Below, piece after piece: positions 21,235 through 64,000 of a stretch of DNA of 64,000 nt. The notes under the pieces are model-generated. The model did not search any database. It was given only the letters and a program-made list of their open reading frames with translations, and was not told where the DNA came from. Each line of letters begins with the position of its first letter. The first letter of the stretch is position 1. A program made the translations under genes and the position numbers. The DNA is taken from the NCBI GenBank assembly GCA_009103225.1, contig RHPI01002262.1, positions 474,317 through 538,316 of the forward strand, written 5' to 3'. This DNA is from Chlorokybus atmophyticus. Taxonomy: Eukaryota > Plantae > Mesostigma and Chlorokybus algae.

Positions 21235-21886
21235 TGCAGCTGCATAGCTCTTGCTACATGCTGGATGACGCGAGAGCCACCAACACCGCCGCCGCCGCCG
21301 CCGCCGCCGCCGCTGATGACCGTGACCTGCCCCAGCGCCACACCGGCCAGCCCGAATAAGATTTATTTGTCATGAATTTATCCACACCCTATAATCTTGT
21401 AGCGAGCGGCCAACACTGTGCGTAAAGCCGGGGTGTTAGTCGCCATCAGCATGCGTGCTAATCCTATTCTATTATTCTAGCATGTGCTGCCTGTGACTTC
21501 ATGGCTTTGTGAAGTCTGTTTCTTGGCTTGAGCACAGTGGTGCGATTCAGCGCATCAGGGCACAACTCATAACTCATGACATGATTCACATAGAGGACAC
21601 TGCGTGAGCCACTACAAGTAGTGTCAGCCACTTCATGCACACTGCTTCATTTCATTTCATTTCATTTCATTCGTGTGCGGTCACATTCATGGTTGAACAC
21701 ATAAACGTGTTTGTGTTCACTGTTGAATTTCTGCTATTTGTGCATAAAATATGCACATGTAGCAGCTACACCATACAACACAACAGCGCATGGTCACAAC
21801 TAGCACTTGGTATACGTTACCGCACTACTGTTATGCAACATACTTATGTTATTAATGCCACATCCAACTACAGTGCTGTGTACGTG

Positions 21887-24828
21887 TTATTTTGGTAATC
21901 GCAGTCGATCACCAGGGTATATCAAGTCGGGGTTCCTGACAACATCAGAGTTCAGCACGGCAAGCGGCTTCCAATGCCGAGTACGACACCTTTCTTCAGA
22001 AATCCAGGTCAGACAGTCTCCGCGTTTGACAACATACCTGCGGTGCACAACAACCACATTACTGTGATGTTTACATTGGTTGTTATGGAGCATCACCGCA
22101 CCTCACACTGTCTTAGCACGAAAGCACGAACGTGCACTCAGACACATGCACACACAGCCAGACACACAGAGCGGCACACATGCGCTAGCATGCACGCACA
22201 TATGCACTTACTCTCTAGCTCTGAATGCGCTGACGCCAAAAGATATTGTTGCAATTACTGCAGTGGCGAACCCGCCAAAGAAAAACCCTGTGCGTTTTCG
22301 CTTTACGACAGGCGCCGCGTCCTCTTCGGGTGTCGCTGGTACTTCCACAGCCTCAATTGTCCCGCTCAAAGGCAACGCTACTTCCTTGATGGCAAGTGGA
22401 GGGGTACTTGCAGCTTTATATGGTTGTTCCTGGTACAAACGCAAAGTCAACTTGTTCACATGCTGTCATACATGGACTTGAACGGCATGCAGCAAACCAT
22501 CAATCGGTATGTGGTGCCAATGCACAAACAATGTCTTGTAGTGGAGCTTGAAGCACAGGGGAAGTGCCTTAAACAATGCACATTGCATGCAGATTGTTGT
22601 GGGTGCCAGGCTTACCTCTGGCAATGCTGTTTGGGTCCTTGACAATAGTTCCTGTACTGCAAGTCCTGTTGAAGCTGCCTGGTGTACATCTCTGTTATAA
22701 CTCGCATCCTCATTCCCAATAGACACAGCGGGTGCCTCTTCTTGTTCATGTCCCGAACTTGATGGCGCGAATGTTGGCTCATCAACAGGCAACAGACTGG
22801 CACTGTCAGGCAAGGGAGCCTCCTCAGGCTCAATCACCTCTTCTAATGGTGCTGCCACTGCTTGTATTGTTGTGGAAGTTTCAGGAGGTGGAATGGTCAC
22901 AGCGTGCAATGGAACATCCTCCGGCTCCTCCGGAGACGTATTACCCGCTGATTGTGTTATTGTGCTTTCGTGAGCTGGTATTGTCACAGCGGGCAATGCA
23001 ATCTCCTCCAGCTGAGACATATCAGCCACTGGTTGTGTTATTGCGGTTTTGTGAAGTGGTATTGTCACAGGGGCCAACAGGACATCCTGCAGCTGGGACG
23101 TTTCAGGAGGTGTTGCCTTTGACTCTGATGATGGCAACAGGCTAGAAGGCTCTGGTGTCTCAGGTGGAGGCGCTGCTGGTTCCTGGGGTGGCTCGGTTGA
23201 GGTTGCTTCTTGCCCATTTGCGTGTGAAGCTTCTGTTGTAGACTGCGCAACCACATGCGCTGGCTGGACGCCTTTGACTGGACTCCGCTCCACTGGCGTG
23301 ACAGATACACTGTCTTCAGGCTGCCAAACACACCTTGCTTTCAACAATGTGCACACGCACGCATGTACATCAATGTTCGTGCAAGACAAAATGTCAGCAG
23401 GGTGGAAGCCGTGAGTAAGGCTTGCAAATCCAAGTCCTTACCTTGCGTGCTGGCATGCGCCATACTCGGCCACTGACTTCATCAAAGTCCAATACCTAGC
23501 AGTTAACAATAAGCTGTCACAGGTATGCTCAGCTGTAACAAGTTCGTGTAGAGCCAGCTACTACTACTATGCAGCCACTACCACCATGTTTAAGCCAAGG
23601 CGCAACCTTCAAGCGTTCAGTACACCATCATAATCATGACCTATGGGTTAAAAAGGTACACAAGAAGGTTACTGCTATAGCTGATGTACTTACGTCCAGT
23701 CCTTGTTCAAGTGCATTCTTTGCCAATAAGCGAATGCAGGTACAGACGCGGCGTGTATTGCGCTTGTCAACAATGTCTGCAGACGAGCACAGCTCCACAT
23801 CATTTACACCAAACTCTTGGCAAACCTAAAATACAAGAATAGTTGCTGGTGAGACACATCCCAATGCAGCTCACAGCATGAAGATATACGTGCCATCTCC
23901 TCACAATGGTGAAGTCGCTGGCTCGCGCGTAGTTCATGAAGCCTCCCGGCGCATTCTTCTCACGCTTGCCAAAAGCTGCAGACTTGATAATGTTGGGTTG
24001 AGTTCGCATGCGCTTCAGGCCCTTTGCCACCTGCTGCCTGCAACGAGAGCATCGCTATCAGGCAATGTCTGTTGCCTACGCTGTAGAACACCAGAGCACA
24101 CGAACAACAAGCATTGCAGGCAGAAATTTGTGAGAAGTCAAGACTGCCATGCATGCGATTGCTTTGACATGCGTGTGTACAAGCATTGAGCCAACTCTGC
24201 CAGCGATGTCAGTGTGTAAACCTTGCGCTAGCAAACAAGCTGCCTGGTGTGCAAGAGAACGAGTAAGTAAGTGACTTACAGTATGGTCCCGTCCTGTATG
24301 AGGGTCGCGAAGTCGTCGGTGCTGCCAAAATCCTGGTTCAAAGTGGCTTCCAGCCACCATCTTGACCGCCTCTGCAAAGCGTTGTGTGCGTCAGCACCCA
24401 GGAGCACTGCGTATGCAGGCAGTGGCCTGGACCTGACACTGCATAAAGATTCTTGCAACGAAACGCAGCAGCTTGCATGTCTACCATGCAAGCTCCTGCA
24501 TTCCGGTTCTTCAACACTAATTCGTGTGGACACATTCATGCACACTGCCCACCCATAATTTCTAACCAATGTGCGTTGCGTTAGTAGTTTATTCGCAGCC
24601 TTAGCCAAGCCAAACAGCCAAGATACCAGCTAGACTAGAAGGACATAAACACAGCAGACCGGCATGGACGCAACAAGCTTTGTCGTGCAAGTGAGCAGCA
24701 ACGATGTGGCTCAGGAAATGTTACATTTGTGTCACGTCGAGAACTAAGCTCACCAGCAGAAACTCGACGTCTTCAGCGGTCATCGCTTCCCGCCGCCCAT
24801 CCACACCGCCGCTCTTCCTGGCAGCCAT
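21887..24828 (-). CDS. ~519-aa protein: N-terminal calponin-homology (CH) domain, Pro/Thr/Glu-rich linker, single TM helix, C-terminal LysM domain; 8 exons
   Basis: Exons 24828-24754, 24371-24280, 24037-23905, 23825-23694, 23495-23442, 23320-22616, 22429-22212 and 22037-21887 total 1560 nt; all introns are GT-AG and phase-compatible. CH-like: RWWLEATLNQDFGSTDDFATLIQDGTIL...SDFTIVCQEFGVNDVELCSSADIVDKRNTRRVCTCIRLL. TM: KRKR-TGFFFGGFATAVIATISFGVSAF. LysM: YVVKRGDCLTWIS...LAVLNSDVVRNPDLIYPGDRLRLPK*. Confidence 0.85.
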
Positions 24829-25158: not shown

Positions 25159-28100
25159 ATGTTGGCTAAGGTTAGGTTACAGAGGCAGCTGTGCGTTTGG
25201 CTTCGGGTTGGCGGGAGCATGAGCGGCGGCGGCGGTGGCGGCGTCAGCAGCGGTGAAGGCGGAATTGGAGGGAGACAGGTGCCTCTTGAAGAAAGTAGTG
25301 GTAGGGTAGAAATCTCACAGCAGCAGCAGCAGCAGCAGCAGGAGGCTAAGCAGGAGAAGTCCCCGCCGCCAATCGCTTACCACAACAAGCAGGCGCCCGG
25401 GCCGCACAGGTGCAACGACCGTCTGGAGGACTTCATTCAGGTGAATGCCGCTGAAAGGCTTGTCTCGCTGTGCATGCTTGTCATGTCACGCATGCATTGA
25501 ACGTCGCGTCTTTGGGCGCAGCTGTTGAAGCACGAGCTCCATGCTCACAAGTGTTTTTGTGCAAGCGCATTTGCATGCAACATGCTTTGCGGCTTTTGGG
25601 TTGTGCGTGCTTCAGTGTATGACTGATTATACGCTTGCTGCGTGCTCTGCTCAGGCTCTCTACCAAGGAGACCCCCGAGTGACTTTGCCAACACCGTGGC
25701 GACTGTTGTGGCAGTGCCTGCGCTCTGAGAAAGGGTGCGTGTTACTGTTTTCAGGTGTGCTTTACTCCATGTCAGCCGTACTTTGAGGCTGAGTTGAGGT
25801 TAACTAAATTCAGATTAAATACGTGTATCTTTTGACCACTGGTTAACACTGTAGACCCATGCAGAGCAATGTGAGTAGCAATGTCCTGTTGATAGGGTGC
25901 TGAACCAAGTACATGGGTGCTCAACCAAGGGCTGATGAGACTGCTGGCTGTCTGTTGCAGGCATGAACCAACGGATCCCTTTGTGTATTTGAAGAAGTGA
26001 CGCACAGGGCTATGCTCCCGGATGTTGCTCCCTGGCGAGCGAGTAGTAGCATTTGTTGGACTGTGCTGTTATGTCAGCTCGAAGCCCAGGATTAGGGAGG
26101 GTGCTGCTTCCTCCAATCATGGCGGCCATGCAGTCCCTCTTCGGTCGGTGCGACATGCGTGTGGTACTGAACAGCCGACCTTTCTGCGCCGGCATTGGCT
26201 TACAATCACACACCAAGCCGCCCAGGACAGGGCGGCCGCCCGCAACTTGTGCGGTCAATAATGCACGAATACGGTGTGTAGCAACTGCGTCCAAGGCAGA
26301 TGTGCAGCCAGTTGAGGCAAGCCACACCTCTTTTGTTGCATCACTATTGAGTTTGACCATAACCTATATTGCTGAGATGTACAGAGCCCTTGCAGGAAGC
26401 GCAAGATGGTCTTCTGAAAGCCATACGATACGAGTGGCGGAATGGCTTTTGTAACACGCAAGGAAACTTTTCCAGGTCGGCAGGAGTAGTTGGCACACAT
26501 GCAACTATCTTTGTTGCTGCGGCTTTCTGACTATTGGTTCCAATGCGTCCAGGTTCGATAGCGTCCTTTGTCGGCATCTGCAGGCGCTCAGCGAGAAGAA
26601 CTCTACCTTTGTGGACTTGTTACCTGCAGCATCCAAGTACGAGTCTTTGTCCCTCCCTCAGCGGCAGAATCTACTACAGCAGGCTGGTTGACTGCGCATT
26701 AGGCTTGCATCATCTGACCATACTGTTTTAGGCCCCTGTACACCCTGCCATCAATGATGTTTTACGTTATGACCATACAGTATGAAGCGTGTGACACGCG
26801 TGTGTTACCATCAAGTCATACAAATCTTGTTTGCAGGCAGAGGCTGCACTCAAAGCCACAAATGCAATGTCCGCAGCTGATGAGACAAACATCACCAAGG
26901 TGACACGCAAGCGCGCAACCAGGAGAGCACCAGCAGATGCAAGCTCCAGTCTGCAGGAGAGTACTGGAAGTGTCGAACGTGCCACACGTAAGCGATCCGC
27001 TCGCAAGAGCAAAGCAGTCGAACAAGAGACTGCGCAACCATCGGATTCAAAATCAACATCAGCAAGTGTTGCATGGGCACAATCGGTCATGGAGGTCCCC
27101 TCATCCATCAACGCTGCAGCCGAAATTCCTGCAGAGTTGTCTGCAGGGGTTGCTATGACTGTAGATGCGCAGGAGGATGATCTGCTTGAAAGAGGCGACA
27201 TTGCAAGCGACAGCCAACCATCAACATCATCATCGCAGTTTGCACCTTCTCCCATTGATGTGTCAGTATCTCGTATCAGTACACTGACGCCCTTACAGAA
27301 GAAGAAGCTTGAGGGCTCCAACATTCATACGGTATTGTGCCTGCTGGTTGTATTTGTGCATGGATACGCATGCGTCAGTCATGCACATCCGTACTTGTAC
27401 AGTTGAGGATGCTTCTTCGTCACTTTCCTCGGCGCTACGCAAGTGTTGTTTCCTGGCATGAGGAAGGCGCACTTGAAGAAGGCAAGCATGTCACCCTTGT
27501 TGCCAGAATCAAGTCCTGCCGGTACACATTTATAGTTTGGTGATGTCACGTTGTGATTGTGCGTAACCACCTGCTACAACGAGTGACGACGTGCCATTCT
27601 TGTGCAGAGCGTTTCCCAGCAAGTTCAAGGGCTGCGTGGAGATCTGCATCGCCCCTGCAAGTCTTTCTGCCTTCGACAACCCGGACAACAGTAGTAGGCC
27701 AGAGCAACTCTGGCTGTACATGTTCTTTCACGGGCCGAGGTTCACCAAGCCTGGTTTTCTGTTCTACATTGCGCGTCAGTACCAGATTGGCAGCACCGTA
27801 GCAGTGACAGGCGAGGTGCTTGTTGTAGCGGCTTTGGTTTGGCTGAAGTCACTTTTTGTCTTCCTGATATGTTGAACGTTGCGCACTGCAACAACTAACA
27901 TCAGCACTGGGCACAACAGTTGCAGTATGGATCACGCGGTTGGACCATGAAGGCTGGGTTCGAGCTAGAGGTATTAGACGAAGCTGTCTCTGATCTTCGT
28001 GCAAGCGAAGCACCCAATAGGCTCATGGCGATGTACTCGTCACGAGGAAGTTGCAACCCTGCATTCTTCTCTTCTGTCGTTCAAAGGTGGCAAGACAGTT

Positions 28101-31695: not shown

Positions 31696-34295
31696 CTACT
31701 TGTTGACAAGGCGCTCGTACAGTTCGAGCCACCGCTCCTCGCGCAGCCGTGCCTCGCGTTCCAGCTCAAGCCTGAGCTGCAGCAGCTGCTGCTCAAACTG
31801 CTGGCGGCGCTCCTCAGTGCGTGCCTCGTGCTCCAGCCTCATCCTGTGCAGCTCCTTCCTCAGCTCGGCCTCCTGGTGCTTGGCCTCACGCTGGTCCTTC
31901 TGCTGCTGCTCCAGTAAGTGCTTCAACAATGCCGTCAAACTCTGCAGTACAGACATGCTTGTCAACAGGCAACGTTCTCTCAGCAGTAACACTCCAGATG
32001 CTATATTGAGTTAGGCCGTAAGTTGACTATCGATACAACCTTGACGGTTGTATCACCGCCAGCACCAATGTCACAAAGGAAAACAGCACCCAAGGTACAG
32101 CCGTGTTCAGCACGTAACCTTGCAAACATTGATGTTGCATGCGCGTTGTTAGAAGAAGAGTCATATTGTCATCGGCATAAGGGGTTGGTTGTGATAGCAG
32201 TGGCAACAGCCATCAAGAACGCCATGATAGTCAAGTGCGAAAATATAGTATATAACAAACTGAAGGGCAGTACGTGTACCTGTTTCTCACTGTCTCGTTT
32301 CCGCTTCTTCGTAGACCGCGACGAGTGTCGATCCGGGTCTTGCTCATTGTTGTCCTCATCACCATAGTCAGACAGCAGATCATCCGGCAGAGAGCCATCG
32401 CGATGCCTCTCTCCGACCTGATCCGAATGCTCGCTGCTGCCGCTCGGCCCAGGGCTTCCCCCTCGCCCCCGCTTAGAGCGCGAGCCGCGCCTGTAACCTG
32501 CATTGACTGCACCTGCGCTGCCGTTTGCGCGCTTCTGCACAATCTTTGTACGCACCTGTAAAAAATCGGCGTGTGTGCATGCGTGCGAGTGTGCATGCCT
32601 GCATGTGTGCTCAACGACTGCATGACTTCATGACGGTTTGCTCACAGATCACGCAGCAGCATGCCAACATGTAACGCACTGCAATAGCAGGATAGCATAC
32701 CTGTGAAGTCCCATGCAGCTTTTCCATGATGTCATAGAAGGCGGGTTTCTCCAGTATCTGTCCTGTGTTGGAATCGATCAGGGGTTCGGTTGGTGGAACG
32801 CCGCTGGCAAGCGAGTTGTATGTCTGCATGAGACGATTGCCATCAAACAAGCATTGTGCAGCGCATGCGAGTGAGGAGATGATGACGTACCACAAAAGGG
32901 GTTTTCACAGCGTTGAACTTATTTTTGTGCTGTTTGGGTGTGAGGGGAAACCCAGTCTTGGAGGCAACCATCACCCATTTTTTGCTTGGCTTCACGCGGC
33001 CTCTTACACCTGGTTGTTGTGCCACACCACGCACCAACTGCGTCAACGGTTGGGGAGTTGCTGCTGATCAGGCCATAAGGTCCACATAACTGTAAAACGA
33101 GCTGCGAGAACACTTGCGTCAACATGCAATGTGCTCCTCACAACAACACGAACCTGTTCCACTTCATGTTCCATCAGTATCAGCAACTCCACACGTTGGT
33201 ATGTCCATTGCCACATCTGCCCATCAATGTCGCGCACCCATGCACGTGACGTGTCCACCTCAGCTTCCAGCGCATCTCTTGGAACCTGCAGCAGGCTTGC
33301 ATGAGAGGCACGCAGGCTTGCACACACGCATATTGTGATGGAGTACTGGTAATTTCAACTTGCCATGCAGCAAGTCAGCTGTAATGCATGTTTCTCTTCC
33401 TTGGCTCTCATGCACAAAAGCAATGTGGCTATAATTGGTTGCAGGATACGATGAGTTGTCATACAAGCTTAATTGCTGCTGCTTAATCTTCCAGCACCTA
33501 CTGCGTTGCTTCATTGTTGATTGCTTGAAGAATGTGCTTTGCTAAATGCTCTCTTCTCCCGTTGATATCAAGTGCCATCCAACTCAGTAAGCACTGTTGC
33601 CACGGGCATGCACCTCATATGGTCCATCTGGGCAGCTAGCATGCATTCCCGATAGACAAACAGACGAAGGAGCTCAGTTGTGCATGCTGCACGACACATG
33701 TCACAACATACTGTTCAATCAACTGAAGACAAGTTTCCTGGTACGCTCAACATGCCACCGCAATACTACGAGGAAATCTGCTTGTAACGAGTTTGAAAGT
33801 AAGTGTGACAACCAAGTGTGAAAACGGATGCCACTGCAATTCTGCAAAGAATTCTTCTTGTAACGAGTCTGGGATTGATTGTGACAACCAAGTGCAAAAG
33901 ATGATGTTGTGGTTGCAAGTGTTAGAACTGATGTGGTGCCTTCAGCAGCAACACATTTTGGCCTGAATGCAACTAAGTGTGATGAGACAGCATTCAATGT
34001 ACACCGAAATGATGACTCAGCAACAAAGACTTGCATGGTGCGTGTGTAATTGTGTTGCCGATACGTGTTACTGACTCACCACATCCATGCCGGCGCCATT
34101 GGCGTCCATGTGCTCTTCGGCGCCGCTCTCGTCAGGCACAGCATGGGCGACAAAGCCATGGTGCTCCGCATGGTGGTGGTGATGATGGTGCTCCACGTCG
34201 ACGACGGCGTCGGCGACAACGCCCACACCCACGCCCACGCCCGCCCTGTCCATGCTCGCCATGTCCCCAGGCTGCTCATAATCGCCCGGGTCCAT
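31696..34295 (-). CDS. Trihelix (GT-type, Myb/SANT-like) transcription factor with C-terminal coiled coil
   Basis: Exon 1 starts MDPGDYEQ and contains a His7 tract. Helix signature WTYQRVELLI...KKWVMVASKTGFPLTPKQHKNKFN...PAFYDIMEKLHG; basic TKKRKR; terminal coiled coil ELEREARLREERWLELYERLVNK*. Confidence 0.75.
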
Positions 34296-42389: not shown

Positions 42390-42900
42390 AGTGTACTCTA
42401 CTGTGTATGTGTTTACATACATATATACACATACATGATATGTATACATAGCTAGACATATATATGTGTGTATATATGTATATATATATATATATATAAT
42501 TGTATTCATAAATATACTTACACACACATACACATATACACGAACACGATATGTACATATATTTCAACGTATATATATCTGTAGCATATAGCACATACAT
42601 TCATTTAATTTAAAATGTATGTATACACATACATAAGTTATCTATTATCGATGTATGTGTGCAAAACATATATATGTATATATATATATGTCCATATATA
42701 CATATATGTATATATGCATATATGTATGTATGTATATATACATATATGTATATATAGTAACGTACGTATAGTAATGTATAATACAATATAATACATATAA
42801 CAATTTTTTGAATATTTTAATATACAACATATGCTATTCATATGTGCATGTGTATGTGTGCATATGTACATATCATGCTATGCACGTACTATAGTATTTG
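42390..42900. repeat. Degenerate (TA)/(TACA)/(TATG) microsatellite-like AT-rich tract
   Basis: Near-continuous TATATA/TACATA/TATGTA runs over about 500 bp. Confidence 0.9.
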
Positions 42901-45488
42901 TATGCACAGTTTTGTTACTGTATTTCTTCAAATGTGATTTTGCTCAGTGCCTTTCAAGGGACTATGTTGAGTCAACATAATCGTAATTATGCCTGCACGC
43001 GTTTTAAGACTATTGCGTTCTATACCGTCAAATGCAATGCCCTCGCCATAACAAGAAACCTTCGTGACAGACCGTGTTTTTATAGTGCGTGTAGACTGTA
43101 GTATGACTCAGATCATAATGGGTCAAGCAGCGCCGCAGTACAGTGTATGTCATCATTATGTGAATGATCCCAATGATGACTGGCATTGAAACATTAATAG
43201 TTGTAATTACTCAAAACGTAACACGGGCATCGTAGCCACCAGGCTTTTGCAGCAAAAGTCGCTGCCATAGGAGGAATTACATGCCATTAATACATGTCCC
43301 ATAATGGTTATGGGACATGTATTTATTTCAGTGTTATGTAAACGGAAATCGGAAGGCTAACACATTAGCATGCATATCAACATATGAACATTGCAAGAGT
43401 GTTCCATTGCATGCAGTACATTAAGCTACATGTGCATATGTGAAAGGCTGCATTAGACACAACAATTGTTTACTATAAGCTTGTGGTAAATTAAACTTAA
43501 GTTTAATACATTTTTTAATATTTGTATTCTATTGGTGAATAACGGATCACATGCTCAGTGAACAATAGATAAACCTTTATAATTTATGCATGATTTGGCT
43601 TGTTTGAGTACAACAGTTAAACATGTAACCTAATGTTATACTTTGATGGATATGACACTAGCATAAAAATATCAGCCACTTTAATATGACACGTACGTTT
43701 TATATCCATGTATAGACCGTTTATCGTCGGTCATATATGCATATAAATATGCAACGGTTACGCGTGTCAGATATGAGACTTATGCAATGTACAAATTTTT
43801 GCAACATGTGATATACAACTGAGAAATATAATGTTCAATTGTAACAATGTACAAAGTTATTTGTGAACAAACATGTTTCACCAGCTGTACATCAAAGAAT
43901 CCTTGTTTGATGTATGATATCAAATAATGTTTTCTCTGTTTTATGCATGCTTTTTGCAGCAAATTAAGACTCATACTCGACATGTGGCTTTTTGCGGCAG
44001 CAACTTTTGCTGTCATATAATAATTCTTACTTAACAGGCAATGACTTAGGATAATCCATTCATATATCATCAGGTATAGTATTGGGATCAACCGATTTAC
44101 AATAAAGATTCCAAAGTATGTAAGCTGATAGGTGTTTTCACATTACCGCAGAAACATTGAGCCGATTTTGCACTTGTTATATATCTTACAATTTATAGCA
44201 TAGTCTACTCGGGCTACAAGTATCGGTTATGTAGGTTTAAATGCCTTGTGAACATAAAATCTCCAGGGGCCGATGGTTTACCTACTAAATACTGTTGGTC
44301 GTAAGTAATACTTTTACCGACATGTACATATATTTTTTGTATGAAATTCTCGTAAATTGATAGAGCATACGGGTCGCACGTTGCGTGACGCCGCTGGCTC
44401 ACTGTAGGTAAAAGTATGCTTACAAAGCAAAATGCGAAGCATTATGCACTTATGCTGTCTATATGCATACTTTAAAGTTATATATATATATATATGTAAA
44501 TAAATATACCTATATAATGGTGTATATTGATGCCTTATGTGCATATGTTTTTTGGGACCATGTATATACTTATGAGGTGAATAGACCCATTGTAGACTTA
44601 TTATCTTTGTAAATCATGCATGCGGCTCTATTGTTTACGAATAGTACTTACTACTGCGCTGTGCTGCTTGCATTGAAAACGCATGTAATGAAAAAGAGCA
44701 TATTTCATATATCATGAGCACAGTCATGTACAATGGAACCCCCTCCCATTCTTACATAAGTGTAACAGCCTGGAGCATTTTCTGTATTTTCTGTATTTAT
44801 TGTACATAAAGCACTTGCTTTGCCGTTTTTGCTAGCCCTATGAAGGCTAATTAAGGGGTGCTCGGCTGCAGCGCGCGACTGCACCTGCGACCTACCCGTG
44901 GCAGCTGACTGCCGGCGACGTGACCTACTGCCAGGCAGCAGTGACGTCGTTGCTGACTGGACCCGCGCTGTGCAGAGGCACATGATGTGACGCGGACTGC
45001 CCAGTGCGCGAGTGGCAGCAGCCTGCACTTGGTCCCGTACTTTGGATTTGCTGTTCGTGAATAAATTGCCCTTTAATTAGGCTGCTATTTCCTTGTGCTT
45101 GTATAATAGGAAAACCCTCTGTGTAATACCAACTATGCTTTCTGCTCTCTGCTGTGAGTGTGCTGGTGTATGCTTGAGAGAGGTGTCATCCAAGGCACAC
45201 TGCTGCGTTCTTGCTTGGCGTGAGATATAGTAGTTTGCGTGTGCGTGTGCGCGCTTGACGCATGCGTGCGCAAAGGAAGGCGAGGTTCCGGTGTGAAGAC
45301 TGTGCTCAGCTGCACACATGTGTTGTGTGACTTGTGTGCTGTGTATGTGAGCACGAGCATCGTTACAATAAGTTCCCCACCTGTGTTGATGCGATTCCCC
45401 TCGAGAGCTCATAAAACATTCAATGTTTTGTATAAAGTTCACAGCCCCAAATACATGCTGTATCTGTGCTGTGAGGGAGAGGGGAAGG

Positions 45489-58619: not shown

Positions 58620-60660
58620 CTACGCGCGAGATTTTCCTCCAGAAACATTCAACACTGTACCGTCCACGTAGCTGGAGCGCTGTGATGCCAAGAAAGCGAC
58701 TGCCAAGCAGACAACCGATCAGCGGCATGCCACTGCGAGATTATGACAAGCTAATTGACGTATGCAATTGTTAGAAGAGACCAGTGACAACTAGGAGCAT
58801 GACTGCATGTCAACAACTAACTGCATTACAACGTATATGACATGGCTGTAGAGCAGGCATACCTGCATTGGCAACCTCCTCAAGAGCGCCGGGCCTGCCC
58901 AAAGGCACATTGGAAGAGCCATAGCTTCCCTTCATTGCCTCCACGGTGGTGCCGCGGGTGTATGCAAGGGCGCGCTCGTACTCGGGAGAGCGCAAGCCAG
59001 TCGGCCGGAGGATGCCGGGGGCAAGACCGACAACGCGGATGGCGTGCTTACCCAATTCCTATAAGACCAAGTCAGCCATTGGCAACAGAAGGCATGCTGT
59101 AGGGCCACATGCAGCTCAAGTTGGGCTTGGGTGCTCATCGCCTAGCAGTATGCTCCAGCATTGTCATTATGTTTGTACCTTCGCCCATGAGCGTGTCATT
59201 GAATATAGAGCAGCCTTTGTGGCAGCATACACGCTCTGGCCCTCTGAGCCCTCCAAGCCCGACTCTGATGCCATGTTGATAATGACACCAGGGCGGCAAG
59301 CCTGCACAGTGCATGTGTGAGCCATTGTCCACTTCCTGCTCGTCATGCTACCACTGATGCATGCAGCCACTCACCTTGATCATCTCACGTGCCACAGCCT
59401 GCGCCATCAGGAAGCAACCCTTCATGTTGACATCGGAAACCTGGTCCCAGATCTCCTCCGTCAGTTCCTCCTGACCCGCGGGATCAACAAGCAAGCGGGG
59501 GATATTGATGCCGGCATTGTTCACCTGCATGACAAACACTGAGAGACATGCATAGGCCACGCGTGAAATCAAACGATTGACATCGTGGTAGACTCTCACC
59601 AAAATATCAATCCTGCCGTACTTCTCGATCACAGTAGCCAATAGATTGTTCACGCTTTCAACATTGCTCACATCCACACCATGGCACATATGCTGGTCGA
59701 TGTTGTCAGGGTAGAGGTGGTTCAGCTCTTCCAGCACCTTTTGGTTCTTCTCTGGGCTGCGATCCGCAATCACCACCACAGCACCATTTGCAGCCAGCTC
59801 CAAGCACACAGCACGGCCAATGCCAGAGCCACCACCTGAAATTGATCCGATCAGCACTAGCTTACCACATTCCCTTGCTTCGCTTCGAGGGCAAAGCAAT
59901 AAGCACTGTTTATAAGTATGCTACCTGCACATGCACGCTGCCTTGCTGACAATCAATACTGCTGCAAGGCTATGCAGCTTGCAACGATGATATGCGCCGA
60001 AACACTCAACATCAAGACCAATACCAAATTAGCCAACACACAGTAGGTAAGACAACCAGCGCACCTGTCACGATGACAACGCAGCCGCCAATGTCGAGCC
60101 AGTTCTCATTGCGCTTGGTGTCCAGCGGCTTGAGGATGGGCAAGGGCTGCGTCTTGACTTCAGGCTCTGCAACTGCCCGAGTGACGAGGGTGGCAGCTCT
60201 GCGGGAGGACTGCGACGTCTTCAAGGCCAGCGGCACCTTGCTGCTCAGGAAGCTGGAGTTCAACCGCTCATTTCCCCTCTGCTGTGCACCTGCACATCCG
60301 TCCACTCAGCAGAGCGCTTGAAGTGCCGGTTGCACACACCCTATGCGGTAGCAACGCAGCCGCGTTTACATAGTACGCATGCACATAGTACACGTTACTT
60401 GGCCTATGCGGTAGCAACGCAGCCGCGTTTACATAGTACGCATGCACATAGTACACGTTACTTGGCAATACAAGAAAAGAAACTGCAAGCCGTGCGCTGC
60501 CTCAACTCAAGCAGTTAACAGGCTACCGCTAGCAGATCAGTTTGAAAAGGACTGTTGAGGAGCTGCATGCACAGGCTGGCGCACCTGACGGCGTGGAGGT
60601 GGAAGCTCGCAGAGACAGCACAGCAAGGCTCTCAGCATGGACAGCGGCAGTGGAAACCAT
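58620..60660 (-). CDS. Short-chain dehydrogenase/reductase of the bacterial sorbitol-6-phosphate 2-dehydrogenase (SorD-like) type with N-terminal plastid transit peptide, ~361 aa, 7 exons
   Basis: Exons 60660-60585, 60289-60065, 59835-59600, 59524-59375, 59301-59179, 59058-58863 and 58699-58620 total 1086 nt, all GT-AG and in phase. Motifs: NWLDIGGCVVIVTGGGSGIG; VNNAGINIPRLLVDP; MASESGLEGSEGQSVYAATKAA; ELGKHAIRVVGLAPGIL..TGLRSPEYERALAYTRG; PLGRPG..EEVA; SYVDGTVLNVSGGKSRA*. Confidence 0.88.
60340..60465. repeat. Exact 63-bp tandem duplication in intron 1 of the SDR gene
   Basis: CCTATGCGGTAGCAACGCAGCCGCGTTTACATAGTACGCATGCACATAGTACACGTTACTTGG occurs at 60340-60402 and 60403-60465. Confidence 0.95.
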
Positions 60661-62197
60661 GTTGCTGACAAGAGACGATGACGCGATGCTTGTCTTTGTA
60701 GTCGTCGTCGCCTACCTCGCCGCGGCCAGGGATAACACCCGACCGAACAATTGACTACAGCTGCACCGTGCAACTTGCAAACAGCCAAGTAATTAGGCGG
60801 CCTCTTTCACCCCACCGCTTGCGGCCTTACAGCTGGCACGCTCCCAGTCCACCAGTGGACCACCACGCAAGCAAGCTGCCTCCACAACAACACTGCGCGC
60901 CTGCTTAGAGGCTTGCACTGCTTCCACTGCTTTCCACTGCTTTGCACAAAGCTATACCATGCACTCCTTTTCAACCACAGTCAAACGACTCATAGGGCCC
61001 AATCCAAGCCTTCTCATGAAAACATACCATGGGTAACGCGGAAGTGTCGCATGCAAGATGTCAACGGAGTAATGTGGGGCCGTTATGGGGGAGCGGTTCT
61101 CCGGACAATGGCCGCCGGCCAGTTGACAGGTGTCGGCACCGGCCGACCGCAGACTGCGCCTGGGATCCTGTCAGTGCGCTGCCTGCAGCGGCCAGTAACC
61201 GCCGTATGACCGACAGGCAGGACTCCTGACATCTTTTGTAGTGGTTGCCTGTGGTTGATGAATGTGTCTTGTTGCATGAGAATCTGACCAAGCGGAATCA
61301 ATAAACACATACATGGAATCCTGCTGCTTACGTGTGGACGTGCACGGGGACGGCCCAAACCGTGAGATCAAAACCAACCACAGCGCAGCCGTTCGATTAG
61401 AGATCTAGACTACAAACAGATGTCCACAATCTATTACGTCGGCCTACACAGTACTAGCCTAGTACGCCGGTCATACCCGTACAGATTCCCTGCCGTATCA
61501 GGCTGCACTGCACAGATATATTCTGCTACGAAGATAGCCATGTACGATATCTTCTGAGGTGCGTGTAATGCCAAAGAACTAGTGGTGCGGCTGTTTGGTC
61601 CGGCCGGACCGGAAGCAAGGTCACGTACACAACACACGCGCAAGGTCCATCAGTCAGTGCAGTGATGGGCATCACACATAGCACCCGCGACTGCCGGGCT
61701 GCGCTGTAGTGTGCCTCTCAGTTGGCTGGGCGGCGAGTACTAGCGTTTAACAGTTGGATATGCCAATAAATGACAATAATGAGCACAGTATGCACAGCAT
61801 GTGCCATGGCCACATGTGACGGCATATTGTTCAGTTGGATATGTTTTGAAGAATATAAGATTATAATAGGTAGTACATGGTGAACTATAGCAGAAGATAA
61901 TTGTGTACTACACATATGGCCGCATATAAATGTATGTATGTATGTATGTAAGGGAATGGTTACATCCAATCTTCAATTGGTGAATTGAATAGAATAGGAA
62001 CTTGCTTACTCGATCCGTATACTATTAGTCGTCATCGTCCAAACCTACCCCTCGTAAAGTAGCCTATATAACCATTTCCTATTGTACGCCGCCAAAAACG
62101 TTGTAAAAGACCACTTCAATAAGCACAATTAAAGGTAACGGTTTCGACTCTGTATGTAATATCATAGAATTGCATCGAAGTCAGTCTATTATTTTAA

Positions 62198-62927
62198 TAC
62201 CATACACAAAAAGTGGCGCAACCGTTACGCCGCAATGCGGTAATCCAAATTGTACATAAATTAGGCGGTAGCGTCGTTGAAAACGAAGTTGCCAAGCACT
62301 GCGTACAAAGCGCGTTGAATCTTGGGCGCGACATGGCAATGGCGAACGAGAACGGTGCGTTAATAGTCGCGCGCGTTGGCAGACAGCGACAAAGTTACGC
62401 ATCAAAACGTGTTTGACAGAACGCGTCATCCATAGGTACGAGGTTGGACGGTACCCCATACCCCAAAAGAATCTTTGAAACTATCCTACCAACAGCAATT
62501 ACCATGTTCGTTAAAACGAGATCTTTCGTTATCGTAACCAATTTCGTTTGGCCGCCGGGTTATACGTCAGCTGAACAAGTACCTAAAAATGATGTACCAG
62601 TAATGCGATTCACCCCAATAGAAGCCACCCCCGAGAATATCGTAGTGCCACGAATGGTTTGTTACATAATTAATTGTGTAAAGGCCCTTTACAACGACCC
62701 CAAAACCCTTCCTGGCAATAACTATGCATTTTCCGCTGTGTTTGCAAAAAAATGCACAGTTGCGCAATATTTTCACAAAAAAAAAAACTATACTTTCGAC
62801 GCTCGTCACGAACAACCTAAAGCACGACCATAGTATGATGTCCAAATGGAGGCATTGTTTTAGACTCATTTTTTACCAAATGGAGGGGGAAGGGCTATAC
62901 AGCAGGTGGGAGGCTTCAATAGAGTGA
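62198..62927 (+). pseudogene. Intronless, relatively AT-rich degenerate ORF (possible transposon or viral relic)
   Basis: One frame is open from 62198 to 62833 except for a single TGA at 62414-62416 (..SKRV*QNASSIGTRLDGTPYPKRIFE..FVWPPGY..). A-runs near 62745-62788 may mark a frameshift into a frame ending at 62927. No family recognised. Confidence 0.4.
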
Positions 62928-64000
62928 ATACGACATCATGTGAATACCATATAACATGATATGTGTAGGGGTTGAGTTTAATTGCGTCATTTTAGTTCAC
63001 ATAAGTTTTAAATCAAGCGACGACATGATGCATATAATTTGTAAGTGTATACTTGTAAAAACTTGTTAATAGTGTATATATATATATATATATATTATTA
63101 ACAACTGTAAGCATTTAAACAATGTGTTAAAATATTCACGTTACGTACTTATGCTTGTCACAATGCATCGTTCATTGGGCAAAGCCAACACCGTAATCAT
63201 AAACGCACCGTTTTCATTATATATTATAGTTATTTAATGACCCACCATTCTGTGTTACAATTAAGTTTATAAGATTCAGCATGTCAATAATAATAATCAA
63301 CTCTTACATAGCAAGATCGCAACAATTTAAATTAAAAATGGTAACCAATATGATACAGTGTATTTGTATTGATATTTTGAATAATTTAACACTTGTTAAT
63401 TACGCAGTTTAAGTTGTACAACGATGTGTACAACGGCGCTTTAACGGCATTTGTGGTTGTTATGCAAGTGGCGAGGTATCACAATTAAGCAGCCTTTTAA
63501 CGATGCGCAACATGCGATTAACAACATGCCATCTTAAATAAAGAAATTCATGTCAGTATGTATAATTAGGCGTAAATGCATAGTCCAGCTTAGACAACCT
63601 TAATGAGATATAATATTGTATAAAGCAAGATGAGGCTCATTTTTTTGCTTAATGCTGCTGTAAAGGGCAGTAGGAAGTGGCTGCTAGCCAAAGGCAAACA
63701 TCGTTTGTAGCAAATGAGTAAGCGCATGCTATTGCTTATAAGGTTGGCACGTACGTAACATCACAACAGTTGCTGTATAGCAAGCTCATGTCGGAAAGGG
63801 GCCAGATGCAATTTGCACAACAGCAAACATGACTTTACGAGGACCAAGGCTAAGCGCATCACCTAACATAAATGAAAGACATGCCTAGGCCTTGAACTCT
63901 GACCCTAAGAGAGGTTAGCCTATAGCTAGTCCACGCCGTTGGGTTAACGTTTATGCATAACGACGATAAAACGTTGCAACTTGGCTGCTCAAACGTTGAA

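Follow-up and report, generated by a model that had tools for sequence, protein, structure and literature searches.

A CH–transmembrane–LysM protein of Chlorokybus atmophyticus, a probable membrane–actin tether from a streptophyte-wide family that includes OPAQUE10-like proteins

The window analysed here, a stretch of 64,000 nucleotides (64 kb) from the streptophyte alga Chlorokybus atmophyticus (contig RHPI01002262.1), carries on its minus strand, at 21887-24828, a nuclear gene (Chrsp22S03511) whose predicted protein combines an N-terminal calponin homology (CH) domain, a long spacer, one transmembrane helix and a C-terminal LysM domain. The gene belongs to a family that has entries in the databases yet is uncharacterised, a variation on the theme of the membrane-to-actin tether with a LysM ectodomain. 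We consider it probable that the protein is the Chlorokybus orthologue of a streptophyte-wide, C-terminally anchored CH family, some members of which are named OPAQUE10, and that it serves as a tether between a membrane and actin, built as CH, spacer, membrane helix and LysM. An earlier reading of the window from its letters alone, here called the original prediction, had proposed the order of these parts.

Gene structure and the choice of splice donor

The gene was rebuilt from six-frame translation together with inspection of splice sites. Eight minus-strand exons (24828-24754, 24371-24280, 24037-23905, 23825-23694, 23495-23442, 23320-22616, 22429-22212 and 22037-21887, the last closing with TAA) make up a coding sequence of 1560 nt that is translated into 519 aa, with consistent exon phases; all seven introns, 79-382 nt long, have the form GT[A/G]AG...AG. 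The single, phase-consistent eight-exon gene of the original prediction was reproduced exactly in its coordinates, and it is borne out by in-phase GT-AG exons, by orthologues and by shared introns. Two separate genes, or a chance open reading frame, are ruled out by the phases, the domains, the orthologues and the conservation of the introns. Exon 1 (24754-24828, minus strand) provides the start ATG and residues 1-25, a lead-in followed by the start of CH helix 1, and the intron behind it, after ..EFLL, is found at the same place in the Selaginella and Closterium orthologues. Exon maps of Chlorokybus, Selaginella and Closterium have in common four introns in the CH region (..EFxx/..WLE, ..DGxIL/, ..Fxx/xC..G and ..V/xDFD, with the slash at the exon junction) as well as the intron between the post-membrane basic cluster and the LysM domain.

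The point on which the architecture turns is the 3' end of exon 7 (22212-22429, minus strand), which contains the end of the spacer, a KRKR cluster, the membrane helix and RAR(E), and which is closed by a strong donor, AGA/GTAAGT. The public model of the Joint Genome Institute (JGI) reads the last 60 nt of this exon (22212-22271, minus strand) as intron, from a weak donor, CGG/GTTCGC, at 22272/22271. Exon 6 matches the eukprot entry jgi/Chlat1 Chrsp22S03511 at 100%, and the public JGI/eukprot protein (P0001, 499 aa) is identical to our 519-aa model except that it is without FATAVIATISFGVSAFRARE; ending exon 7 at 22272 instead of 22212 yields P0001 exactly. Because P0001 has no membrane helix, the membrane-spanning inference depends on which donor is chosen. 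The skipped nucleotides are in frame, the helix they encode aligns with the transmembrane segment of every orthologue, and in the C-terminal alignment the gap of the JGI model falls exactly on that segment of the family. Moreover, GTTCGC is unlike the seven donors of the present model, all of which are GT[AG]AG. In the Selaginella and Closterium maps the membrane helix likewise stands at the end of the penultimate exon, with the LysM domain in a last exon of its own. Exon 7 with the helix is accepted here on account of the collinear C-terminal alignment and the conserved intron positions, and from this comparison of sequences we conclude that exon 7 was correctly drawn in the original prediction and that the public model either is mis-annotated or describes a minor isoform. 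The GTTCGC site, 60 nt upstream of GTAAGT, would then be either an annotation error or an alternative 5' splice site that switches between anchored and soluble forms.

In Mesostigma viride the gene Mv18291 is annotated with two isoforms (P0013/P0168), of which RA.2 ends right after the membrane helix, without LysM, and RA.1 runs on into the LysM domain. Isoform variation at the intron between helix and LysM may be a feature of the family.

It is very unlikely that the public annotation describes the main product, which would then be a 499-aa soluble cytosolic CH-LysM protein without a membrane helix, similar in this to plant LysM proteins that stay inside the cell (LysMn, F-box-LysM). The JGI/eukprot model does use the 22272 donor, and the gene models of the Chlorokybus genome combine ab initio, homology and transcript evidence, most of them being transcript-supported (PMC7027972). 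Plants do have intracellular, non-secretory LysM proteins (PMC2728734), and the two annotated Mesostigma isoforms differ at the same junction. Against this stand the deviant donor, the in-frame helix shared with all orthologues and the conserved exon layout with the helix in the penultimate exon, as well as the low chance of meeting such a stretch at random: only 0.64% of 20-codon windows in the six frames of the 64 kb are both open and this hydrophobic. The correction thus concerns a public protein that lacks the very membrane anchor by which its family is defined.

Membrane helix and topology

GFFFGGFATAVIATISFGV is the only 19-residue window of the protein with a Kyte-Doolittle (KD) value above 1.6, at 1.74, and the predicted helix, GFFFGGFATAVIATISFGVSAF (residues 445-466; 22223-22288, minus strand), aligns with the transmembrane segment of every orthologue. 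The KRKR cluster (residues 440-443; 22292-22303, minus strand) precedes it on what would be the cytosolic flank, and basic residues at this N-terminal flank are common in the family. This agrees with the KRKR followed by one weakly hydrophobic helix that had been predicted. Likewise, hydropathy of the 519-aa model revealed no N-terminal hydrophobic segment, in line with the predicted lack of a signal peptide. Since the protein has no signal peptide and a single, C-terminal membrane helix, we infer from the sequence that the CH domain and spacer are cytosolic and that the LysM domain lies on the far side of the membrane, as the original prediction had it; the same arrangement is kept in about 20 orthologue clusters. 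Architecture and topology are taken to be functional because they are conserved.

Behind the helix the Chlorokybus protein continues with RAR and has a tail of 53 aa, which holds for the 22212 donor only. Tails of the relatives measure 47-110 aa, with medians of 54 aa in members with a LysM domain and 51 aa in those without. At least two K/R are present within the six residues after the helix in 68 of the 72 members (18/19 LysM-bearing and 50/53 LysM-less), and the net charge of the tail is +4 and +8 in these two groups, respectively.

Two proteins from the moss clade of the CH tree, P0006 and P0007, have a long, acidic and Ser-rich insert between helix and LysM, giving tails of 94-110 aa; therefore, the far-side domain can sit on a tether of its own.

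The CH domain and its adjoining motif

An N-terminal CH domain had been predicted and was recovered by Pfam (PF00307) at 35.1 bits (E 1.6e-8; residues 31-136, model positions 10-105/109) against a gathering cut-off of 26 bits, in a scan of the 499-aa annotated protein. Single CH exons, which are pieces of 30-44 aa, gave no Pfam match, as expected. The domain occupies exons 2-4 and includes introns 2 and 3 (23718-24356, minus strand). Its AlphaFold2 (AF2) model (pLDDT 84.1) has the CH fold with seven helices, for which Foldseek returned transgelin, GAS2-CH3, calponin and IQGAP1 (E 1.6e-4 to 1e-3, prob 1.00). A profile of the family's CH region, compared with the PDB, found the GAS2 CH domain (5.3e-13) and IQGAP1 (7.6e-9), and also Rng2 and calponin. 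In combination, the profile and the model show the region to be a single CH domain of the type-3 class (GAS2/IQGAP/calponin-like). The single CH domains of GAS2, IQGAP1, Rng2, calponin and transgelin are the closest solved ones by profile (E 5e-13 to 4e-6) as well as by fold, at about 20% identity, and GAS2-CH3, itself a fold match of the family's CH domain, has been solved on F-actin (9kbx). Binding of F-actin is predicted from this likeness to actin-binding type-3 domains. A CH domain of the microtubule type is disfavoured, with a fold probability of 0.47 for EB1.

What sets the family apart from these five proteins is a motif behind the CH domain, with the consensus VPDFDxVT..MP, which is peculiar to the OPAQUE10-like family. 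In Chlorokybus it is encoded by exon 5 (23442-23495, minus strand) as (V)LDFDEVSGRVWRMP, residues 145-162, the Chlorokybus version of the motif itself reading VLDFDEVSGRVWRMP. In the alignment of this region (A2), F148 is invariant, together with W31, G53, L56, F98, C102, G106, D117 and R132, and D149 is kept in at least 90% of the sequences.

The spacer

Exon 6 (22616-23320, minus strand; residues 163-397) encodes a disordered spacer that had been described as long and P/T/E-rich and that is, by composition, P/A/E/S/T-rich (P 15%, A 13%, E 12%, S 10%, T 9.5%). No Pfam match was obtained for this exon. It includes an 81-nt tandem repeat at 22933-23106 (minus strand), corresponding to repeats of about 27 aa (..AVTIP..E.T.I.Q..), which Tandem Repeats Finder reports with a period of 81, 2.1 copies and 76% match.

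The spacers of relatives contain lineage-specific repeats, such as the seven of maize O10, as given in its paper, or the repeated blocks of a 1684-aa Taxus protein, and the spacer therefore grows repeatedly by tandem duplication.

The LysM domain

The last exon (exon 8; 21887-22037, minus strand) encodes the LysM domain (residues 471-519), which the original prediction had recognised in the last ~50 residues, and the TAA stop. Scanned alone, the exon matches Pfam PF01476 over the full model (positions 1-43/43) at 21.2 bits, the gathering cut-off being 20.9 bits, so that CH and LysM each pass the Pfam cut-off; against a LysM hidden Markov model (HMM) of the family itself it scores 50.7 bits (E 1e-15). 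The AF2 model, made from an alignment of 28 sequences, reaches a pLDDT of 94.1 and has the beta-alpha-alpha-beta fold, with helices at positions 9-17 and 22-28, and LysM domains make up most of the best 50 PDB fold matches listed, at TM-scores of 0.73-0.91. Residues G6, L9 and N29 are invariant and D7, I12, P36 and I39 nearly so; all of these are also structural. Binding of an N-acetylglucosamine (GlcNAc) polymer, i.e. peptidoglycan or chitin, is predicted from domain and fold.

By fold the nearest domains are chitin- and peptidoglycan-binding LysMs, and by sequence the nearest is the LysM of E. coli Kbp (YgaU), the best PDB match of the exon (7pvc, E 0.002 in a PDB phmmer search; TM-score 0.88). 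The C-terminal NPDLIYPG-RL-LP signature is common to the Chlorokybus LysM, Kbp and many bacterial LysM-only matches (of the type 'NPDxIYPGQxLxIP'). Kbp differs in being a soluble cytoplasmic BON-LysM potassium sensor, with neither a CH domain nor a membrane helix.

The family across streptophytes

An exhaustive phmmer search returned 214 proteins at E<=1e-3, of which 61 were at E<=1e-10, and family members were matched by the Chlorokybus protein at E 1e-26 to 1e-10. The best matches (108.9-75 bits) share the CH region, and those that bear it carry a C-terminal membrane helix, nearly always with a KD value of 1.9-2.9. The complete CH–transmembrane–LysM arrangement was found in about 20 clusters, from algae to ferns: LysM-bearing members occur in the early-diverging streptophyte alga Mesostigma viride, in the Zygnematophyceae (Netrium, Closterium, Spirogloea, Mesotaenium), in bryophytes (the liverwort Riccia, and Sphagnum), in lycophytes (Selaginella, Diphasiastrum) and in ferns (Psilotum, Ceratopteris). 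A further LysM-intact protein, P0004, comes from the transcriptome SRR8442434 and is probably that of a gymnosperm, because it is 38% identical to a Taxus protein over 644 aa, including the fast-evolving spacer. The family LysM consensus is YEVKxGDTLSxISRRxGKSSWxELVxLNPxIxNPDLIYPSERLRL. All 28 rows of the LysM alignment A1, 19 from the family and 9 bacterial, match the Pfam LysM model (best E 1.9e-21), and the order of basic cluster, membrane helix, basic cluster and LysM is collinear in every member of the C-terminal alignment, the JGI model alone being gapped.

Detection of the CH domain by Pfam is weak across the family. Among the members scanned, Chlorokybus and Closterium alone reach the cut-off, Mesostigma falling slightly short of it, and no Pfam CH match was obtained in Selaginella, Riccia, Physcomitrium (both paralogues), Pteridium, Amborella, Thalictrum or Canna. 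The family's own CH HMM, on the other hand, scores the Selaginella, Ceratopteris and Physcomitrium members at 180-220 bits. Because Pfam CH misses most land-plant members, tables of architectures based on Pfam would seldom list CH alongside LysM, which may explain why the combination has gone unnoticed. Members appear in databases as 'LysM domain-containing protein', 'CH domain-containing protein' or 'protein OPAQUE10'. The original prediction had suggested that the architecture might be undescribed. In the papers searched, we found none on the CH–transmembrane–LysM architecture or any tying OPAQUE10 to calponin homology or LysM, and CH with LysM is not among the architectures of a plant LysM survey (PMC2728734); the databases, however, hold a streptophyte-wide family under several names.

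Six land-plant members (P0003, P0009, P0016, P0022, P0025 and P0026), which with their relatives were the source of the family CH HMM, have no reported Pfam CH match, and the overall tally for the land-plant members scanned is six of seven.

Loss of the LysM domain

A maximum-likelihood tree built from 95 rows of the CH region agrees with the species tree, in the order Chlorokybus/Mesostigma, Zygnematophyceae, liverwort and mosses, lycophyte, ferns, P0004 with Taxus, and finally a clade holding the angiosperms. This last clade, of 65 clusters with an SH-aLRT of 100, contains all the named angiosperms (Amborella, Aristolochia, Canna, Thalictrum, Telopea, Dionaea) and is LysM-less: in none of the 65 clusters is the domain present, whereas the CH domain, the membrane helix, the dibasic cluster and a basic, low-complexity tail of about 50 aa are all kept. 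The angiosperm tail ends in (V/I)YP(A/G)E(K/R)L(K/R)(F/L), with an invariant Y-P, and in an hhalign comparison this motif falls on the last strand of LysM, NPDLIYPGxRLxL, over 15 columns (E 5.6e-5, prob 66%). Most simply, the angiosperm tail would be a decayed LysM, a reading that is owed to orthology, position and length more than to this alignment, which covers the last columns only. We infer from the distribution that the LysM-bearing form is ancestral and that angiosperm members replaced the domain with the basic tail of about 50 aa. A single loss at the base of the angiosperm clade offers a clean evolutionary contrast. Decay is seen elsewhere as well: in one Physcomitrium paralogue the LysM has GD changed to AD and scores 17 bits, below the Pfam cut-off, the other paralogue ends in mid-domain, and the Pteridium and Adiantum members, which represent a paralogue, are without LysM.

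Relation to OPAQUE10 and other known systems

The Selaginella member is named 'protein OPAQUE10' by NCBI and the Thalictrum member 'Opaque10', and the seed-plant proteins resembling maize O10 belong to the same family by the CH-region tree, by this naming and by the Selaginella homologue of the O10 paper. Maize O10 was described as a protein of 1059 aa with a conserved N-terminal region of 268 aa and seven repeats, the Selaginella homologue serving as outgroup (PMC4991801). Its C-terminal transmembrane segment (1002-1024) was reported to be needed for localisation to the endoplasmic reticulum (ER) and protein bodies, and its N-terminus to bind lumenal zeins; the protein was called a cereal-specific fusion of three unrelated parts, with mention of neither CH nor LysM (PMC4991801). 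The paper was retracted in 2022 over unresolved problems with figures and data (PMC9668117). Shared between O10-like proteins and the present one are a conserved N-terminal part of ~160-270 aa, a variable and repeat-rich middle, a C-terminal membrane helix with basic cluster, and a tail of ~50 aa; O10 itself, compared here by its paper's description, has ~35 aa after the helix (PMC4991801). Angiosperm-clade members differ in lacking LysM, of which they have the terminal (V/I)YPxE(K/R)LK(F/L) motif only, and in being longer, at about 300-1,680 aa. The supposedly cereal-specific OPAQUE10 is thereby placed in a family that reaches to the earliest-diverging streptophyte algae and whose original form ended in LysM.

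Among plant LysM proteins, DipM (LysM and LytM; in the plastids of glaucophytes, moss and charophytes) is a nucleus-encoded LysM protein at plastid peptidoglycan, and moss DipM has no predicted transit peptide (PMC4015805). Unlike the Chlorokybus protein, DipM is soluble and acts as a hydrolase; it has several LysM repeats but lacks a cytoskeletal domain, and the homology is confined to LysM. LysMn, which is without membrane helix or CH domain, shows that a plant LysM need not be extracellular (PMC2728734). Plant LysM receptor kinases and LYPs combine a signal peptide with three LysMs and a kinase or a GPI (glycosylphosphatidylinositol) anchor. A plant LysM receptor (LYK/LYR/LYP) was rejected for the Chlorokybus protein, which has a single LysM, lacks an N-terminal hydrophobic segment and gave no kinase match.

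Two further systems resemble the protein in layout or in role. Nesprins (nesprin/ANC-1/MSP-300) join an N-terminal, actin-binding CH region through a long spacer to a C-terminal membrane helix and a short far-side domain that grips a partner in the intermembrane space; they have paired type-1/2 CH domains and spectrin repeats, and their KASH peptide binds SUN proteins. KASH-domain tails end in PPPx in animals and in xVPT in plants. The OPAQUE10-like family instead has a single type-3 CH domain and a LysM fold. Membership of the KASH/LINC group was rejected, as the tails end in ..RLRLPK or ..EKLKF(xx), without a KASH-type terminal motif. CHUP1, a functional analogue for a plastid role, unites an outer-envelope anchor with actin binding; its anchor is N-terminal, its domains are unrelated and it has no LysM.

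Mechanism and target membrane

As a tether, the protein would be inserted post-translationally in a tail-anchored manner, given the lack of a signal peptide and the one membrane helix ~53 residues from the C-terminus. The CH domain and spacer would remain in the cytosol and the LysM domain would come to lie in a lumen, in an intermembrane space or outside the cell. The CH domain would hold F-actin, the repeat-prone spacer would set the reach, and the LysM domain would grip, beyond the membrane, either a polymer that contains GlcNAc or some other partner. With binders for cytoskeleton and glycan on opposite sides of a membrane, the protein is a candidate for mechanical coupling of plastid peptidoglycan, or of an ER or lumenal glycan, to the cytoplasm.

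Several observations weigh against this tether. Actin binding is not general among single type-3 CH domains. The Pfam margin of the LysM domain is small, the same residues reaching 13 bits in a scan of the whole 499-aa annotated protein, and the Chlorokybus helix, at a KD of 1.74, is less hydrophobic than that of any other member (family median ~2.2). Word searches of the protein collection returned only the query itself for the whole protein and only a bacterial LysM protein for the last 100 residues, so the collection holds neither close Chlorokybus relatives nor transcript-derived fragments; an exact-sequence look-up of P0001 gave no contig match. A soluble isoform from the other donor may exist, the annotation being partly transcript-built. 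Finally, a strict definition of tail-anchored proteins limits the C-terminal element to <= ~30 residues (PMC8644595); the protein has a single C-terminal transmembrane domain and, by hydropathy, no signal peptide, and its 53-aa tail exceeds this limit. It would be tail-anchor-like rather than a strict member of that class.

For a membrane-actin tether of this build, the membrane itself may be one of several. The ER (or the nuclear envelope) is possible, if short of likely; a LysM in its lumen could attach to N-glycans through their chitobiose core, or to a lumenal partner, and the CH domain would link the ER to actin. The succession of CH, long spacer, membrane helix and short lumenal domain resembles nesprins. 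Homology to OPAQUE10, through the Selaginella and Thalictrum names and the Selaginella outgroup of the O10 paper, points the same way, as do the reported requirement of the C-terminal helix for ER localisation (PMC4991801) and the fact that the ER is the default route of post-translationally inserted C-terminal anchors (PMC8644595). However, the O10 paper is a retracted one (PMC9668117), and the zein binding that it reported for the N-terminus misfits the inferred topology, which would place that part on the cytosolic side. Tail-anchored proteins of the ER do not typically have a tail so strongly basic, with a conserved dibasic cluster, and a plant KASH motif is lacking, as the proteins end in ..RL(K/R)(L/F), sometimes with <=3 more residues (two in Chlorokybus), and not in ..PT. 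The tail would fit a plastid: basic C-terminal elements and a dibasic motif next to the membrane domain are described for organelle outer membranes, nonpolar or acidic ones for the ER (PMC8644595), and the family has its dibasic cluster in 68/72 members, with net basic tails. A tether in the plastid outer envelope, with LysM on peptidoglycan in the intermembrane space and CH on actin, for positioning or division of the plastid, the reading preferred in the original prediction, nevertheless appears somewhat unlikely. The distribution of LysM favours it, the domain being intact in streptophyte algae, a liverwort, Sphagnum, lycophytes, ferns and a probable gymnosperm and lost in 65/65 angiosperm-clade clusters. 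Streptophyte algae, bryophytes and ferns are reported to have all core peptidoglycan enzymes (PMC7455551), the spruce set is functional and many angiosperms are without core peptidoglycan genes (PMC12681378); DipM provides the precedent of a LysM protein that acts on plastid peptidoglycan without a transit peptide (PMC4015805). Conversely, the angiosperm loss is a single event, a correlation with n=1, and 2/3 LysM decay events (Physcomitrium; the Pteridium/Adiantum paralogue) fell in lineages that retain peptidoglycan, including Physcomitrium, which needs plastid peptidoglycan and yet has one paralogue with a decayed and one with a truncated LysM. Seed plants have a patchy peptidoglycan toolkit, not a missing one (PMC10784329), and one paper claims peptidoglycan in angiosperm plastids (PMC9954125), which would break the correlation. 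Also unfavourable are the sole localisation report for the family, ER and protein body for maize O10 in the retracted paper, and the identity of the nearest solved LysM by sequence, cytoplasmic Kbp, which is no wall binder.

A wider evolutionary scenario, in which the ancestral CH–transmembrane–LysM protein stapled a peptidoglycan-walled plastid, across its outer envelope, to actin, its LysM decayed to a short linear motif as the classical wall was dismantled in angiosperms, and OPAQUE10 is a late, repurposed descendant, is unlikely. If true, the protein would be the first protein partner known for plastid peptidoglycan that faces the cytosol, and would link plastid and actin in a style that came before CHUP1; the function of the peptidoglycan layer of plant plastids is openly described as unresolved (PMC10784329). 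Quite improbable is a place in the plasma membrane, as a kinase-free glycan sensor or wall anchor whose extracellular LysM would bind chitin, microbial peptidoglycan or a wall glycan and whose CH domain would reach cortical actin. The exoplasmic LysM topology would allow this if the protein moved from the ER to the surface, and the fold matches of the LysM domain include chitin-binding Ecp6, CEBiP and a Volvox chitinase. However, the signal peptide, the three LysMs and the kinase or GPI anchor of the known plant LysM receptors are all lacking, a single LysM is usually a weak binder, and no data point to this membrane.

Other features of the window

Scans of the window for neighbouring open reading frames, tRNAs and Rfam families added nothing on the CH–transmembrane–LysM gene. 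On the plus strand at 25219-25300, ~390 bp upstream of its start codon, lies an ATG with a GGC-rich, Gly-rich open frame, which may belong to a neighbour in head-to-head orientation with a common promoter region. A (TTCAT)5 microsatellite (21646-21671) follows shortly after the stop codon, and a (CCG)9 run (21286-21313) lies further downstream.

Farther away, an AT-rich island at 42400-44500 has a GC content of 26-39%, compared with ~50% elsewhere, and holds open reading frames without a Pfam match and no Rfam or tRNA match; a second low-GC stretch (GC 0.39) covers 62001-64000. Tandem repeats were recorded at 33752-33894 (76 bp, 1.9 copies, 80%) and at 60340-60466, the latter a perfect 63-bp duplication (2.0 copies, 100% match). 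An open reading frame at 59351-59899 on the minus strand matches adh_short (E 4.6e-26) and is probably one exon of a short-chain dehydrogenase/reductase (SDR) gene.

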